Positions 10,302 through 50,579 of a stretch of DNA of 64,000 bases are shown one piece after another. The DNA comes from Cyanophora paradoxa CCMP329 (Eukaryota; Plantae; Glaucophyta), in the NCBI GenBank assembly GCA_004431415.1, contig QPMI01000088.1, positions 62,001-126,000 on the forward strand, given 5' to 3'. The notes below the pieces were generated by a model. The model saw only the letters and a list, made by a program, of their open reading frames with translations. It was not told where the DNA came from and did not search any database. The position numbers were made by a program, and so were the translations under genes. How positions within the stretch are numbered: the first letter of the stretch is position 1; each line of letters begins with the position of its first letter.

Positions 10302-10423
10302 CGCGCCTGGTTGCGCTCACACGGGCGAGAAGGGAGCGGCCAAGGTGTGCGCAGCCGAAATTCGTATGCGGTTGCAGGTTACACGCATACGGTGCTTTTT
10401 GAGTCTGCGTGCAGTTGAAGGCC

Positions 10424-10770
10424 TGCTCGAGTGCCTAGCTCGCGTTCGCCTGCGCTGACCCGGCGCTCCAGCTCCCGCGGTGCTGCGCTTTGCTCCGCTT
10501 CTCGCTGCCGAGTGCGCGCGCTTCCCGAAGGATTACCGCCACTCGCCGCTCGCCGCCTGCAGCGCTCGATGGCAGCTGCACCTGAGCTCAAACGCGTAAG
10601 AGGGTCTTTGCCAAGCCGGGACCTCGAGCGGATCTGCCTTTTCAACCGTCGCTGTAGTATAGCGGTCAGTATACCTGCCTGTCACGCAGGTGACCCGGGT
10701 TCAATTCCCGGCAGTGGCGCTTTTTCAACCCCGGGCCTCTTTTGCGCTGGGCGCTCGTGCCCGCGCTCTC
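10424..10770 (+). repeat. tRNA-Asp cassette copy 1 (tRNA plus conserved ~225-bp upstream and ~50-bp downstream flanks)
   Basis: Colinear with the reverse complement of 50019-50364 (shared GCAGCTGCACCTGAGCTCAAACG, CGCTTCCCGAAGGA, GGCCTCTTTTGCG). Confidence 0.9.
10648..10719 (+). tRNA. tRNA-Asp(GTC)
   Basis: Acceptor stem GTCGCTG/CAGTGGC, anticodon arm CCTGC-CTGTCAC-GCAGG, T-loop GGTTCAATTCC, followed by a T-run; resembles plant cytosolic tRNA-Asp. Confidence 0.97.
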
Positions 10771-19800: not shown

Positions 19801-22800
19801 CGATGAGGTCGCCGGCCTCGAGGACGCTGCCCTCGACCTTGTGGTAGTGGATGCGGCCCGACTCGGGGGCCACGAGGGGCATGTACATCTTCATGACCTC
19901 GATCTCGGCGTACGAGGCGCCGGCCTTGACGTGCGCCCCGTCCTCCAGCAGGTGCCGCACCAGCTTCCCCGTCATCTGCGAACGAAGCTGCGCGCGGGGC
20001 GGCGTCGGACGCGTAGGAGGCGGGGGGAGGCGACCGGCGGGGCGGGGAGGGGCGGACCTGCGTGGGGTCGTACTCGTTGGGGAAGATGGCGGTCTTGCCG
20101 TCGATGACGAGGCGGAGGCCGCCGACCTCCTCCTTCGCGTACACCACGTGCGACTTGCCTGCCCGAGGCGAGGAGCGAGCCGGCGTGAGCGGCGCGGCGC
20201 CGTGCGGCGCGGTGCGGCGCGGCGCGGGGGGTGCGGGGGCACCGTCGAGGAGGATGAGGAGGCCGCCGTCGGAGAGGGGCCGGACCTCGGCCTGGGCGCT
20301 CGTCTTGTTGATCGTCAGCTTGTACGTGTTCGGGCAGCACCGCGTCACCACGAAGTTGTACTGCGCCCCGCCCGCTCAGTCCGGGGGGCCGAAGCAGCGC
20401 GGAGGGCCGCCGCCGGCCGCCGGCTCGGACCTTGTTGTCGTCGTAGATGAGGTCGATGGTGAAGGAGATGAGGGAGATCTGCTTGGGGGGCATCTGCCCG
20501 CGCTCCAGCATCGCCTGCACCTCCGCCGTCCGCGCCCGCGCCATCGTGAACGCCCGCTGCAGCGCCCCGCACATCACCGCCAGCAGCGTCTCCGGCTTGT
20601 CCGCCGTCATCTTCTCCGAGATCAGGCCTGCACCCCGCCCCGCGTCAACGGAGGGGACGAGCCGGAGGCGAGCGGAGGGGAGGCCGGCACCGTCGAGCCA
20701 CTGCGTGTTGATCTCGTTGGCCTTGTACTGCTTCGTCTCCAGTAGCTTGATCAGGTACTCCACCTGCGGGGAGGGTGAGGAGGGGCGCGAGGGCAGCCGA
20801 AAAAGACGGAGGGGAAAGGATGGGAGGGGAAAGGGGGCGTCGCCGGCATCAGGGATAGAAAGTGTCCACATTGGGGTTCGGACTTCAACGAGGATAATAT
20901 CATCAATTGGCGGCGACGCCACGGGAGAGGGAAGAGGGGGTTCAGCGGGCTCGGGTTGTCAGCAAAATGTGTCATCAAAGGGGTTCTCGAGGCCCCACAG
21001 GTCTATCAACTTTACTTGGAGCATCATTCGAGCCGACGCAAGGAAAAGCTCTAGGAAGAATGAGAAAGGAGGCGGGCAGGTCAGCAAAATGTGTCATCAA
21101 AGGGGTTCTCGAGGCCCCACAGGTCTATCAACTTTACTTGGAGCATCATTCGAGCCGACGCAAGGAAAAGCTCTAGGAAGAATGAGAAAGGAGGCGGGCA
21201 GGTCAGCAAAATGTGTCATCAAAGGGGTTCTCGAGGCCCCACAGGTCTATCAACTTTACTTGGAGCATCACTCCGCACGCCAAGGAAGCAAGCGAAAAGA
21301 AACGAAAACCAAACACGCAAGCGGGCGAGGGGCGGACCGGGGTGCGGATCTCGCCGTGGATGGAGAGCTCCTTAAGGGCGCAGACGAGGTTCTTGCGCGC
21401 GAACTCGCGGTCCTCGCCCCACGCGAACAGATGCCCGAACTGCCCGCACCGAGGTCAGATTCGAGCTCGAAACCGATCCGGGCAAGCGCCGGGCTCGAAC
21501 CTGCGAGTCGGAGTACTCGTGGATGCCACCGCGGCCCGACACGGAGAAGTAGCCCCAGACGTTGGGCGTGGAGCGGAAGTTGAGCTCCTGGATCTGCCCG
21601 CTCGTCGGCTGGAAGCCCTGCGAGCAAGCAAGTCAGGAACGCGACGTCCGGCGAGCCGCGTCGGCTGGGAGCCCCGCGCGGACCTCGTCGGGGTTCTCGG
21701 CCGTGATGCGCGCCGCGATCACCTGCGAGCCGAGTGAGCAGGAGGAGAGGAGAGGAGAGGGGGGGAGAGGGGAGGGGGCGGACGTGGCCCTTGGGCCCGA
21801 CGCGCTGCTTCTTGTCGAAGTCGATGGCGGCCTCGCCGTAGGGGTCCTCGCCGTAGAGGCGCCGGATGGCCGGGATGCGGTCCAGCCGGATCCCCATCGC
21901 CACGTTCAGCTGCGCCGCCGGCAGGTTCACGTCCGTGATCCACTCCGTCACCGGATGCTCCACCTGCCCCCGCCCAGCCCGACCATCAGGCTCGACTCCG
22001 GCGGAATGCGGGCGGGCGGGCGGGCGGGCCTGGAGGCGGGGGTTGAGCTCGAGGAAGTAGTACTTGCCGTTGTCGTAGAGGTACTCGACGGTGCCGGCCG
22101 AGGCGTAGTTGACGAGCTTGGCGAGCCGCACGGCCGCCTTCTCCATCTCCGTCCACACGTGCTCGGGCGCCGCGACCACGGGGCCCTCCTCCAGGATCTT
22201 CTGGTGCCGCCGCTGCACGGAGCAGTCGCGCCCGTACAGCGCGATCGCGTTGCCGTGCTGGTCCGCCAGCAGCTGGACCTGCGCGCACCCCGGGTCAGGC
22301 CCGGCCGTGCCGCGCCGGTCGGGGCCGGCTCGCGAGGGCGGACCTCGAGGTGGCGGGAGGAGGCGCAGAGGCGCATGATGAAGATGGGGGAGCCCGGGAC
22401 CTCGCCCTGCACCGCCCGGAAGGCCGTCGGCAGCGCATCCGCCGATGTCACCTGCCCGCCCGCCCACCCCGTCGGAAAAGGGCGCGCGCGGTCGCGCCGG
22501 GGCCGCGAGCGGACCTTGCGGATGCCCTTGCCACCGCCGCCCTCGGAGGCCTTGATCATGATCGGGTAGCCGACCTTCTCCGCGGAGGCGAGCGCCTCCT
22601 CGACGGTCGTCACGCAGGCCTGCGGGGCAGACGACCGGTCAGCTCGGACGCAGAGGAAGGGAGGAGGAGAGGGGGGAAGGCGGGGGCAGGGCGGGCCTTG
22701 CGGTAGACGTCCTCGGGGATGCCGTTGGTCTTGTAGTCGACGGTGATGCCGTCGCCGGACCAGCCGACGCAGGAGACCTGCGCCGACTGCGCCAGGATCG

Positions 22801-39438: not shown

Positions 39439-40577
39439 ATGCCGCGGCTGGAGCGGCTGCCGTCGTCAAGCGGCTTCACCGCCTACAAGTGGATCACGGT
39501 GACACCCCGGCGGACCGCGCAGGCAAAATCTGAGCAACAATCCCATGCAAATACGGCGCCACCTCCACCCCCGCCTCCTCCGCAGCCAATCCTCCCGCCC
39601 GTTGTGCCGCCAGCCCCCGCAAGGGCTGAGCCAGCCCGCTCCCCCTCCCCGGCTGCATCCCAGCAGCCTATGGAATGTCCTCGCAAACCAGTCGTCCGCT
39701 CGCTCCGACCCCCTCGCAAATTGGCCCTTCCCAGCGACCAGAAGTGTGCTCGTGTATCTTTCTCTCCCTGCACGACTGCGCGGCACTTCTCACGCGCAAG
39801 TGCAGGCCTATTGTAAGACCTTCTTTTCAGTCCGTCCTCGCGTCCTGCGCCAACGCTGCTGAGAGCGCCATCAAGTGAGCTTGCATCTATCGTGTTATTT
39901 CCACTGCTAATGGTTTGCAGAAATCTGCAGGCAACCCTCCAACCACCAGATCAGGCAGATGTGCTGTTGAAGGTCCAGTGCCGAAAGGTAAGCTAGTTTG
40001 CACGGGGGAGATTCGCCAATGTCAACTCAGTCATCTGCAGTTTACCGTGGGAAAATTCACATCTTCTTGGCCATCCACTGTGACCTTCTTCACGGATCGT
40101 GCCGAGTACTTTTTCATGCAGCAGCTGCCTTCGGGGGAAAAGGACAAGGTCAGCTCGCTCTGTGGCTTCCCGAAGTGCTAATGACCGTGCGACATGCACA
40201 GGTCCTGATGCAAATGTGGTATGCTGATATGGAGAGAGTACAGCTGAGTGATAGGAGGCAGACGCTCAAATTCAAAATCGGCAGGCCATTAGGTATCATT
40301 CCGTTTGGCGTTTGCATGCCTCCAACAGCAACTGATTGTGCCGTGTAGAGCACTTCCCCGCAGGCTACGATCATCTGGCACCTGAGCACAGCCTCTCAAT
40401 CGAGTTCAACTCAGCAGCCGACCTGCGTGATTTTCAACGTGATGTCTACGAAAAGCTCCTCCTTAGGTCAAAGCCCTGACCGTGCATGCTGTGATATGGT
40501 TGATGCCTCGCGGCAAATGTATTTCTATGCCTCAGTCTAGCCCATCAGCAATTGAAAGCTGGCCAGCCGCGCCCTGA
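39439..40577 (+). CDS. Hypothetical protein, Pro-rich N-terminus and putative PH-like C-terminal domain
   Basis: Spliced beta-strand pattern FTVGKF..VTFFTDRAEYFF..VLMQMWYADMERVQL..LKFKI..SIEFNSAADLRDF. Confidence 0.55.
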
Positions 40578-45421: not shown

Positions 45422-45823
45422 GCGCAGCGAGTTACCTGCTGTTTCAATGATGCTTTTTCGATTCGTACATGCTCGCATGCATGCGGCGTCGACCTTCACT
45501 GTCCTGGCGGTTTTTGCCTCCAAGCGCAGGTTGCGAAACTCGTGGTTGATCTTCATGATGCGCGCGCGCCCGATCTAGGTCAAGATAGATAGATAGATAG
45601 ATAGATCATAAAGAGCACGCGGTCCGCCATCTGAAGACCTAGGAGACGGCCTAGCTCCGTATGCTATATGCGCATGCGTCACACACGGCGTAGTCGTCGG
45701 TGACTCGTCACATGCCAAGCGCAGCGAGTTACCTGCTGTCAATGATATATATCGATGCTTTTTCGATTCGCACATGTTCGCATGCATGTGGCGTCGACAT
45801 GCACTGTGCTGGCGGTTTTGCCG
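45422..45823 (+). repeat. Diverged ~100-bp direct duplication (45422-45519 and 45718-45823) around a (GATA)n tract
   Basis: Both copies begin GCGCAGCGAGTTACCTGCTGT and share GATGCTTTTTCGATTCG, CGCATGCATG, CTGGCGGTTTT. Confidence 0.85.
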
Positions 45824-47666: not shown

Positions 47667-48660
47667 ATGCAGTTCGTCGCCGGCGCCGCGGCGCCGGTTG
47701 CGCGGGCGCGTCGGTCAGACTTCCTAGGAGTCTCTGCACGCACGCTGACGTGCCCATCCGCCGTCCGTGCACGGCGGACGCCTCGAGCTCAGTCGCCTAT
47801 CATGGCGAGCTCGAGCTCGAGCTCGGATTCAGGCAAGAAGTCGGTCCTGTTCGTGTGTCTCGGCAATATCTGCAGATCTCCAGCCGTGCGTCTTCTATGC
47901 GATGCCTATGGACGCAGAGCCGGAACGTCCGCCCGCCGCGGCGCGGCACTGAACTGTCATTATTTGTTTTTTGCAGGCGGAGGCGACATTCAAGCACTAC
48001 ATCAGCGAGGCCGGTCTGGCCGATAAGTTCGAAATGGACAGGTGCAGATGCGACCTATAAAGAGCGGCCTGAGAAGCACCACTCGGCAATTTAGTTAGAG
48101 CAATACATCTGGCTAACACTAGTCGCAGTTGCGGCATCGGATGTGAGATGGAGGGGCATGTTGGCGACCCGCCCGATCGGTGAAATCAGCCCACGCATGC
48201 CAAGGACCCATCGGATCTGACTTATGCACTCCCTTGCAGCCGGATGCGAGCTGTTGCTCGAGAACGGGGTATCCCACTGGACGGCAGGGCGCGGCAATTT
48301 GTTCCTGCTGACTTCGAAAAGTTCGATGTAAGTTTGGCTGCATTGCCTGCATCCACTCTTAAGTTTTGTGGTGCAGCTCATCCTCTGCGCTGATGCTGGC
48401 AATAAACGTGGTGTGATGTCAATGGACCGAATGAATCAGTATGAAAACAAAGTCAAGGTGCTTCTTCCTTACCCTTTTTTATGATATCTGATTGGCAAGA
48501 ATTCTGATTCACTGTGCAGATGATGACCGAGTTCGTGACAGACAAGCAGAAATTCCCTGACGCATCTGTGCCGGACCCATATTACCAGGGCAACTTTTCT
48601 TATGTGTTTGACCTGCTTACAAACATGAGCCAGGGGCTCCTCGAATCCCTTTCGGATTGA
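47667..48660 (+). CDS. Low-molecular-weight protein tyrosine phosphatase, probably plastid-targeted
   Basis: MQFV transit peptide; P-loop VLFVCLGNICRSPA, GHVGDPPD, RARQ, VPDPYY; TGA 48658-48660. Confidence 0.92.
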
Positions 48661-50018: not shown

Positions 50019-50364
50019 GAGAGCGCGGGCAAGAGCGCCCAACGCAAAAGAGGCCCCGGGGACAAAAGCGCCACTGCCGGGAATTGAACCCGGGTCACCT
50101 GCGTGACAGGCAGGTATACTGACCGCTATACTACAGCGACGGTTGGAGGATCGGATCCACCCGAGGAACCGTGTCAGCTAAGATCCCTCTGCACGTTTGA
50201 GCTCAGGTGCAGCTGCGATCGGGCGCTGCAGGCGGCGAGCGGCGAGCGGCGGCAGTCCTTCGGGAAGCGCTCTCACTCGGCAGGTGGAAGCGGAGCGAAG
50301 CGCGGCACCGCGGGAGCACGAGCGCGGGGTCAGCGCAGGCGAACGCGAGCGCGGCACTCGAGCA
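50019..50364 (-). repeat. tRNA-Asp cassette copy 2
   Basis: Inverted homolog of 10424-10770. Confidence 0.9.
50069..50140 (-). tRNA. tRNA-Asp(GTC), identical to 10648-10719
   Basis: Exact reverse complement of the first copy; followed by a T-run on the minus strand. Confidence 0.97.
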
Positions 50365-50579
50365 GCTTCTCGAGCTTGGCTTTCAAGCTACAGCTCCTTC
50401 GGGGTTCCGCGAGGGCTCCGTGCGCGCTGCGATCGAGCGCTGCAGGCGGCGGCGAGCGGCAAACGCCTTCAAGAAGCGCGCTCCGGAGCACTGGGGCCAG
50501 ACTGTCCCGCAGTCCTGCTGGTATCCAAATGCTTGCTTGGCTCGCTACGATCGCATCTTCGTGTCAGCCTGCGGAAGCC

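Follow-up and report, generated by a model that had tools for sequence, protein, structure and literature searches.

The stretch of DNA analysed here, which we call the window, comprises 64,000 nucleotides (nt) of contig QPMI01000088.1 (positions 62,001 to 126,000) from the glaucophyte Cyanophora paradoxa CCMP329. Its minus strand carries a gene for acetyl-CoA carboxylase (ACC), and one intron of this gene contains four units laid out like snoRNAs (small nucleolar RNAs) of the box C/D type: unit 1, which occurs once, and unit 2, which is present in three tandem copies, A, B and C (Table 1). Our results suggest that these units are probably genuine snoRNA genes, whose guides are predicted to pair with 18S ribosomal RNA (rRNA).

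A long intron in the acetyl-CoA carboxylase gene

The host gene was identified through Pfam matches on the minus-strand open reading frame (ORF) pieces located between 14.4 and 23.1 kb, in which the exons were searched piece by piece and not as a joined spliced model. Four families, ACC_central (E 2e-109), Carboxyl_trans, CPSase_L_D2 (ATP-grasp) and ACCA_BT, were found on these pieces, and because of them we take the host to be a multidomain eukaryotic ACC.

On the minus strand the intron runs from a GT at 21337 to an AG at 20764, with the codons for GEIRTP directly before it and those for VEYLIKLL directly after it. An earlier reading of this DNA from its letters alone (the sequence-only reading) had described an oversized intron of 574 nt between these two peptides, and this was confirmed in all respects. 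Thus, spliced Logan contigs from two RNA-like runs belonging to different studies (X1 and X8) skip exactly 574 nt with GT..AG ends. The intron is therefore real, and it is removed from the dominant mRNA in a single step. In the same contigs, four neighbouring ACC introns are skipped with lengths of 70, 63, 61 and 66 nt, the long intron being 8 to 9 times the length of its neighbours. Moreover, it is AT-richer, with a GC content of 0.47-0.57 versus 0.70-0.85 in the neighbouring introns. The identical spliced junction was also seen in the mRNA of a related organism (run X13), in which the exons are roughly 90-97% identical.

Table 1. Coordinates in the window of the ACC intron and of the snoRNA candidates that it contains
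Feature	Position	Strand	Basis
Host intron, ACC gene	20764..21337	-	sequence, spliced contigs, composition, Pfam on exon-bearing ORF pieces
Unit 1, box C/D snoRNA candidate, 85 nt including closing stem	20836..20920	-	10-bp + 2-bp stem, folding z, shuffle expectation
Unit 1 box C, UGAUGA	20900..20905	-	sequence, C...D stem scan
Unit 1 D' guide, 12 nt	20883..20894	-	complement of 18S CUUCAACGAGGA
Unit 1 box D', CCGA (differs from CUGA at one base)	20878..20881	-	sequence
Unit 1 box D, CUGA	20849..20852	-	sequence, C...D stem scan
Perfect 122-bp tandem repeat, 2.6 copies, 100% identity	20958..21270	-	Tandem Repeats Finder
Unit 2 copy A, C GUGAUGC...D CUGA, guide 21247-21257	21203..21271	-	sequence
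Unit 2 copy B, C AUGAUGC...D CUGA, guide 21125-21135	21081..21149	-	sequence
Unit 2 copy C, guide 21003-21013	20959..21027	-	sequence, folding, stem scan
Unit 2 copy C, box C AUGAUGC	21021-21027	-	sequence
Unit 2 copy C, box D' CUGU	20997-21000	-	sequence
Unit 2 copy C, box C' UGAUGA	20972-20977	-	sequence
Unit 2 copy C, box D CUGA	20959-20962	-	sequence

Architecture of unit 1 and the three copies of unit 2

Read 5' to 3', unit 1 starts with a 10-nt stem arm, box C, an 18-nt spacer that bears the guide, and box D'; these are followed by 7 nt, a weak box C' (UGUGGA), 12 nt, box D, 3 nt and the complementary stem arm. Box C is preceded by a U and not by the purine of the RUGAUGA consensus, and the distance from C to D is 57 nt. 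As for the internal boxes, D' keeps three of the four consensus positions and C' four of six. The closing stem consists of a perfect 10 base pairs (bp) plus two canonical pairs adjoining the boxes, and the predicted fold has the geometry of a kink-turn, with a 3-nt bulge ahead of the GA in box C. The minimum free energy of this fold is -31.6 kcal/mol, compared with -18.5 +/- 2.9 kcal/mol for shuffled sequences (z -4.59), and none of the 200 shuffles was as stable. A scan of both strands for stem-closed UGAUGN...CUGA arrangements with at least 10 bp returned unit 1 and nothing else, with 0.045 expected per block-shuffled window, and the plus-strand 12-mer of its guide also occurs a single time in the 64 kb, where 0.01 would be expected. 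The boxes (TGATGA/CCGA/CTGA), the perfect stem and the position of the 12-mer all agree with what the sequence-only reading had described. Taken by itself, unit 1 is very likely a genuine snoRNA, and we class it as a high-confidence one.

The three copies of unit 2 that had been noticed at the same time were also found, each with the shared 11-mer (starting at 21003, 21125 and 21247; 0.00 expected in the window), and they lie inside the perfect tandem repeat. From box C to box D each copy spans 69 nt, arranged as box C, 20 nt with the guide, box D', a GGGG/CCCC hairpin, box C', 9 nt and box D. The order C, D', C', D is thus the correct one; C' and D are perfect, and C (A/GUGAUGC) and D' (CUGU) match their consensus at six of seven and three of four positions, respectively. 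Since the 9-nt spacer is too short, unit 2 has no second guide on the side of box D. Perfect identity within the repeat extends from box C of copy A to 1 nt past box D of copy C, the outer flanks are unrelated or just about 50% alike, and the sole difference immediately before box C among the copies is purine to purine. To judge from the sequence, this identity bounded by the boxes favours a discrete functional unit.

Other properties of the array weigh against its being made of working snoRNA genes. In both folding and the stem scan, no copy of unit 2 shows a terminal stem adjacent to the boxes: the stems of copies A and B reach at most 4 bp and are offset from the boxes, and an external stem of 6 bp (GGCUCG/CGAGCC), 5 nt off box D, is present in copy C alone. 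The copies fold no better than their shuffles (z +0.3 to +0.5), the C box is imperfect, D' ends in U and the gap between C' and D is just 9 nt; covariation gives no signal either, owing to the 100% identity of the copies. Note that the missing stem lowers the confidence in unit 2 and does not exclude it from the family, because many eukaryotic snoRNAs have no long stem.

The same deviations in the C and D' boxes, the missing adjacent stems of copies A and B, and the shuffle-level folding would be expected if only unit 1 worked and the 122-bp array were a recently amplified C/D-like repeat, either decaying or inactive, or an orphan whose target is not the nucleotide A312 discussed below. The perfect identity of the copies would fit such a locus too, as the product of a very recent duplication without selection. 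What this explanation leaves unaccounted for is that the unit 2 boxes are correctly ordered and spaced, that the guide is in register and a hairpin separates D' from C', that the C and D boxes delimit the identity of the repeat, and that the array adjoins a good snoRNA on the sense strand; we consider it rather unlikely. All four units are located on the ACC sense strand within one excised intron, forming a cluster, as had been proposed from the sequence. We regard it as likely that the ACC intron is a polycistronic host of box C/D snoRNA genes in which all units are genuine, with unit 2 being, at moderate confidence, a single-guide snoRNA amplified in tandem.

Predicted targets in 18S rRNA

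Box C/D small nucleolar ribonucleoproteins (snoRNPs) methylate the nucleotide that is paired fifth upstream of box D or D'. The D' guide of unit 1 forms 12 Watson-Crick pairs with the 18S string CUUCAACGAGGA, at positions 2-13 upstream of D', and that of unit 2 forms 11 Watson-Crick pairs with CUAUCAACUUU, at positions 3-13. The predicted target of unit 1 is therefore the last C of CUUC in CUUCAACGAGGA, which is C1568 in the numbering of a 1800-nt yeast-type 18S rRNA; that of unit 2 would be the A of CUA in CUAUCAACUUU, A312 in the same numbering. Note that this independent application of the rule led to the same two nucleotides as the sequence-only reading.

The Rfam scan found no rRNA within the window, and the guides were matched to the rRNA of other eukaryotes only. 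The reference was heterologous ribosomal DNA (rDNA), taken from 98 contaminant contigs (fungi, plants and other eukaryotes) that a eukaryotic 18S 24-mer detected in bacterial genome assemblies. In all 44 eukaryotic rDNA loci readable at both regions, the two target strings are present in core segments of the 18S, and the unit 2 string lies 1252-1264 nt upstream of the unit 1 string. The sequence-only reading had stated that both strings occur in conserved eukaryotic 18S. In the Rfam eukaryotic small-subunit (SSU) rRNA consensus, the CUUC part of the unit 1 site and one base of the unit 2 site vary among eukaryotes. Two of the fetched rDNA loci have a G variant, with which G-U pairing would remain.

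Against the fetched rDNAs, the D' guides of unit 1 and unit 2 gave the sole conserved all-Watson-Crick duplexes in register with a box. The 12 nt upstream of box D in unit 1 were considered as a further guide and rejected, their best conserved match, in fungal 25S rRNA, comprising 11 bp, two of them G-U, and lying away from any known site. Alternative placements of D' in unit 1 that would select positions 1572 or 1573 were discarded as well, as none leaves a usable duplex.

Matches of bare 12-mers to the rDNA of seven species are common, at about 100 per strand across the window, and for this reason an rRNA match is meaningful only through its register with the boxes. We estimate the chance of a match in register at about 0.002-0.008 for the 12-mer of unit 1 and about 0.01 for the 11-mer of unit 2; the latter value, about 1% for a match of 11 nt at one particular guide position, also leaves some room for an array in which unit 2 does not guide. 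The frequency of bare matches could further suggest that the intron holds no snoRNA at all, and that words resembling boxes, an inverted repeat rich in GC and strings similar to rRNA simply coincide by chance in a long intron that bears a minisatellite. The joint chance of the boxes, the 10-bp stem and the in-register guide of unit 1 is nevertheless about 1e-4 per window (a partly estimated figure), all elements are found on the transcribed strand, and the composition of the intron is distinct, so that we hold a mere coincidence to be highly improbable.

Neither C1568 nor A312 is among the 35 2'-O-methylated (Nm) sites of Arabidopsis 18S (PMC8053127). This speaks against the proposed cluster and its targets, and in the case of A312 it also agrees with an array without function next to a working unit 1.

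In favour of the cluster, the region around the unit 1 target is methylated in other organisms. Yeast snR57, the guide for 18S Gm1572, and Arabidopsis SnoR8 are, like unit 1, box C/D guides to the same short 18S segment (...CAACGAGGAAU...), and they differ from it in that they select yeast positions 1572 and 1573, respectively, whereas the register of unit 1 selects C1568. Human is not known to have a methylation site in this segment. The SnoR8 site is 18S Am1579, which corresponds to yeast position 1573 (PMC8053127). No sequence homology of unit 1 with either SnoR8 or snR57 was detected.

The search for reference rDNA also showed that at least 98 eukaryotic rDNA contigs, for example yeast-type units of about 9.2 kb, contaminate the species-representative assemblies of bacteria and archaea, with plant rDNA being present in assemblies of leaf-nodule Burkholderia. 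A contig of 4543 nt filed as viral in IMG/VR (L001) contains 912 nt that span the whole Rfam 18S model and a second 18S piece on the opposite strand; it was rejected as an 18S reference, as a rearranged partial 18S.

Expression, processing and relation to known clusters

Eleven RNA-like runs from three studies contain one third of the words sampled, a proportion equal to the exon share. Several negative results count against the cluster. No discrete small RNA was seen, the aligned runs showing spliced mRNA only. No Rfam family reached threshold, either in the whole window at gathering thresholds or in the intron at E values up to 10. Finally, the unit 1-like pattern (C box, guide, D') was absent from the viral contigs scanned. 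None of the runs recorded as RNA contains the intron. One RNA-like run of 2024 (X12) has a single contig of 152 nt at 21044-21195, at depth 5 and without any ACC exon, and its length of 122 plus 30 is what a 31-mer graph of the tandem repeat would give (a circularised repeat path). Since this contig includes the spacers, it would be low-coverage DNA, perhaps enriched in the repeat, or else intron or precursor RNA, perhaps abundant, and not mature snoRNA.

Searching Rfam was a check that the sequence-only reading had proposed, and in the intron it came out negative, with sub-threshold matches to generic C/D families. These were snoR38 (RF00213) and snoU25 (RF01298), whose weak alignments to unit 1 scored 17.6 and 15.1 bits against gathering thresholds of 45 and 50 (E 4-7). 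They reflect the generic C/D architecture shared with unit 1, but unit 1 belongs to neither family, since there is no correspondence between the guide regions. A match of the intron to a long non-coding RNA in the same scan was spurious. In metagenome contigs the unit 1 pattern had three matches, all in one GC-rich bacterial coding sequence, and they were therefore rejected as snoRNAs. Protein word searches for the orthologous intron in relatives, using the ORF across the intron and a 471-amino-acid ACC exon, were empty within the length filter, which is weakly informative. Every route to a relative thus came back blank.

If the cluster is genuine, its units would be processed from the host transcript. 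RNA polymerase II would transcribe the ACC pre-mRNA, from which the 574-nt intron is observed to be spliced out, and the C/D kink-turns of all four units (unit 1 and the unit 2 copies) would each be bound by Snu13, Nop56, Nop58 and fibrillarin. Debranching, endonucleolytic cuts in the pyrimidine-rich spacers, or both, would then be followed by exonucleases that trim the RNA to the protected snoRNPs. The D' guides would pair with 18S rRNA, and fibrillarin would 2'-O-methylate the nucleotide paired to the fifth guide position upstream of D', C1568 for unit 1 and A312 for unit 2.

The spacers suggest another route, compatible with the polycistronic cluster, in which the long intron would consist of consecutive mini-introns and internal or stepwise splicing would release one snoRNA per lariat. 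The minus-strand spacers at 21149-21201 and 21027-21079 each contain a pyrimidine tract with CCTAG at its end, followed by 13 nt and then by GTCGGC; each repeat thus offers a sequence resembling a 3' splice site (TTCTTCCTAG) with GTCGGC 13 nt on. In addition, box D together with the base after it (CUGAC) is similar to the branch motif found in the neighbouring introns. These spacer motifs may be cryptic splice signals. Each 122-bp repeat would then read as a 5' site at GTCGGC, a branch-like CUGAC over box D, a pyrimidine tract and a 3' site at CCTAG, the 13-nt spacers being discarded. This layout, like the mini-intron chain in general, seems very unlikely to us: X1 and X8 show the single 574-nt skip only and no junction reads for the spacer sites, no zero-length AG|GT junction was found inside the intron, and retained 13-nt pieces would shift the reading frame. 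Moreover, GTCGG and TAG are unlike the GTCCG/GTGC and CAG of the neighbouring ACC introns, and a branch point in box D would clash with the assembly of the snoRNP.

As a polycistronic cluster excised with one intron, the locus resembles others already described. Intronic snoRNA clusters occur in varied host genes of green algae and plants (PMC7671301), and because of this a lipid-synthesis host is not remarkable; in this point the sequence-only reading, which had considered the host unusual, did not stand. In Chlamydomonas reinhardtii, intronic clusters of box C/D and H/ACA snoRNAs are known, according to what PMC7671301 relates of Chen et al. (2008, Genetics 179:21). As occurs in the Chlamydomonas and plant clusters, several snoRNA genes, often tandem isoforms, share one intron on the sense strand of a protein-coding host, a polycistronic precursor is inferred, and the hosts extend beyond translation genes. 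The differences are the lineage, here a glaucophyte, and the copies, which are 100% identical here and diverged isoforms there; in addition, nothing in the Arabidopsis map corresponds to the guides and predicted sites found here. Intronic snoRNAs are also present in Ostreococcus tauri, as are the intronic clusters 3 and 5, and ribosome or RNA-processing genes make up only about half of the hosts (PMC7671301). Like the units described here, its intronic snoRNAs are processed from excised introns, but nearly all of its genes are single-copy, whereas one unit is tripled in the ACC intron.

Several other features were seen in the window. An inverted repeat of 302 nt with 87% complementarity has its arms 39 kb apart (10423-10724 and 50064-50365), and each arm contains a tRNA-Asp(GTC) gene (10648-10720 on the plus strand and 50068-50140 on the minus strand). 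A direct repeat of 66 nt, 91% identical, is found at 45449-45514 and 45754-45819, 305 nt apart. Two further C/D-like arrangements are present on the plus strand. The first, at 48414-48507, is a weak candidate with GUGAUGU...CUGA and a 7-bp stem that includes three G-U pairs; the surrounding stretch is AT-richer and immediately precedes a CAG|ATG junction, and its 10-nt complement to large-subunit (LSU) rRNA is out of register with box D. The second, at 40501-40577, has UGAUGC...CUGA and a 6-bp stem; since its complements to rDNA are solely GC-rich 10-mers, it probably arose by chance.

What is new here is a set of previously undescribed probable snoRNAs with two predicted sites that are off the Arabidopsis map; the knowledge of how snoRNA genes are organised remains unchanged. 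Our literature search found no paper on snoRNAs of Cyanophora. If confirmed, the units would count among the earliest snoRNAs reported from the glaucophyte lineage, and two lineage-specific sites of 2'-O-methylation in conserved segments of the 18S would come with them. C1568 would then share a helix with the yeast and Arabidopsis sites, at a distance of 4-5 nt, a point of interest for the drift of methylation sites inside a segment. For annotation, oversized and AT-richer introns can help to flag snoRNA hosts in this GC-rich genome.

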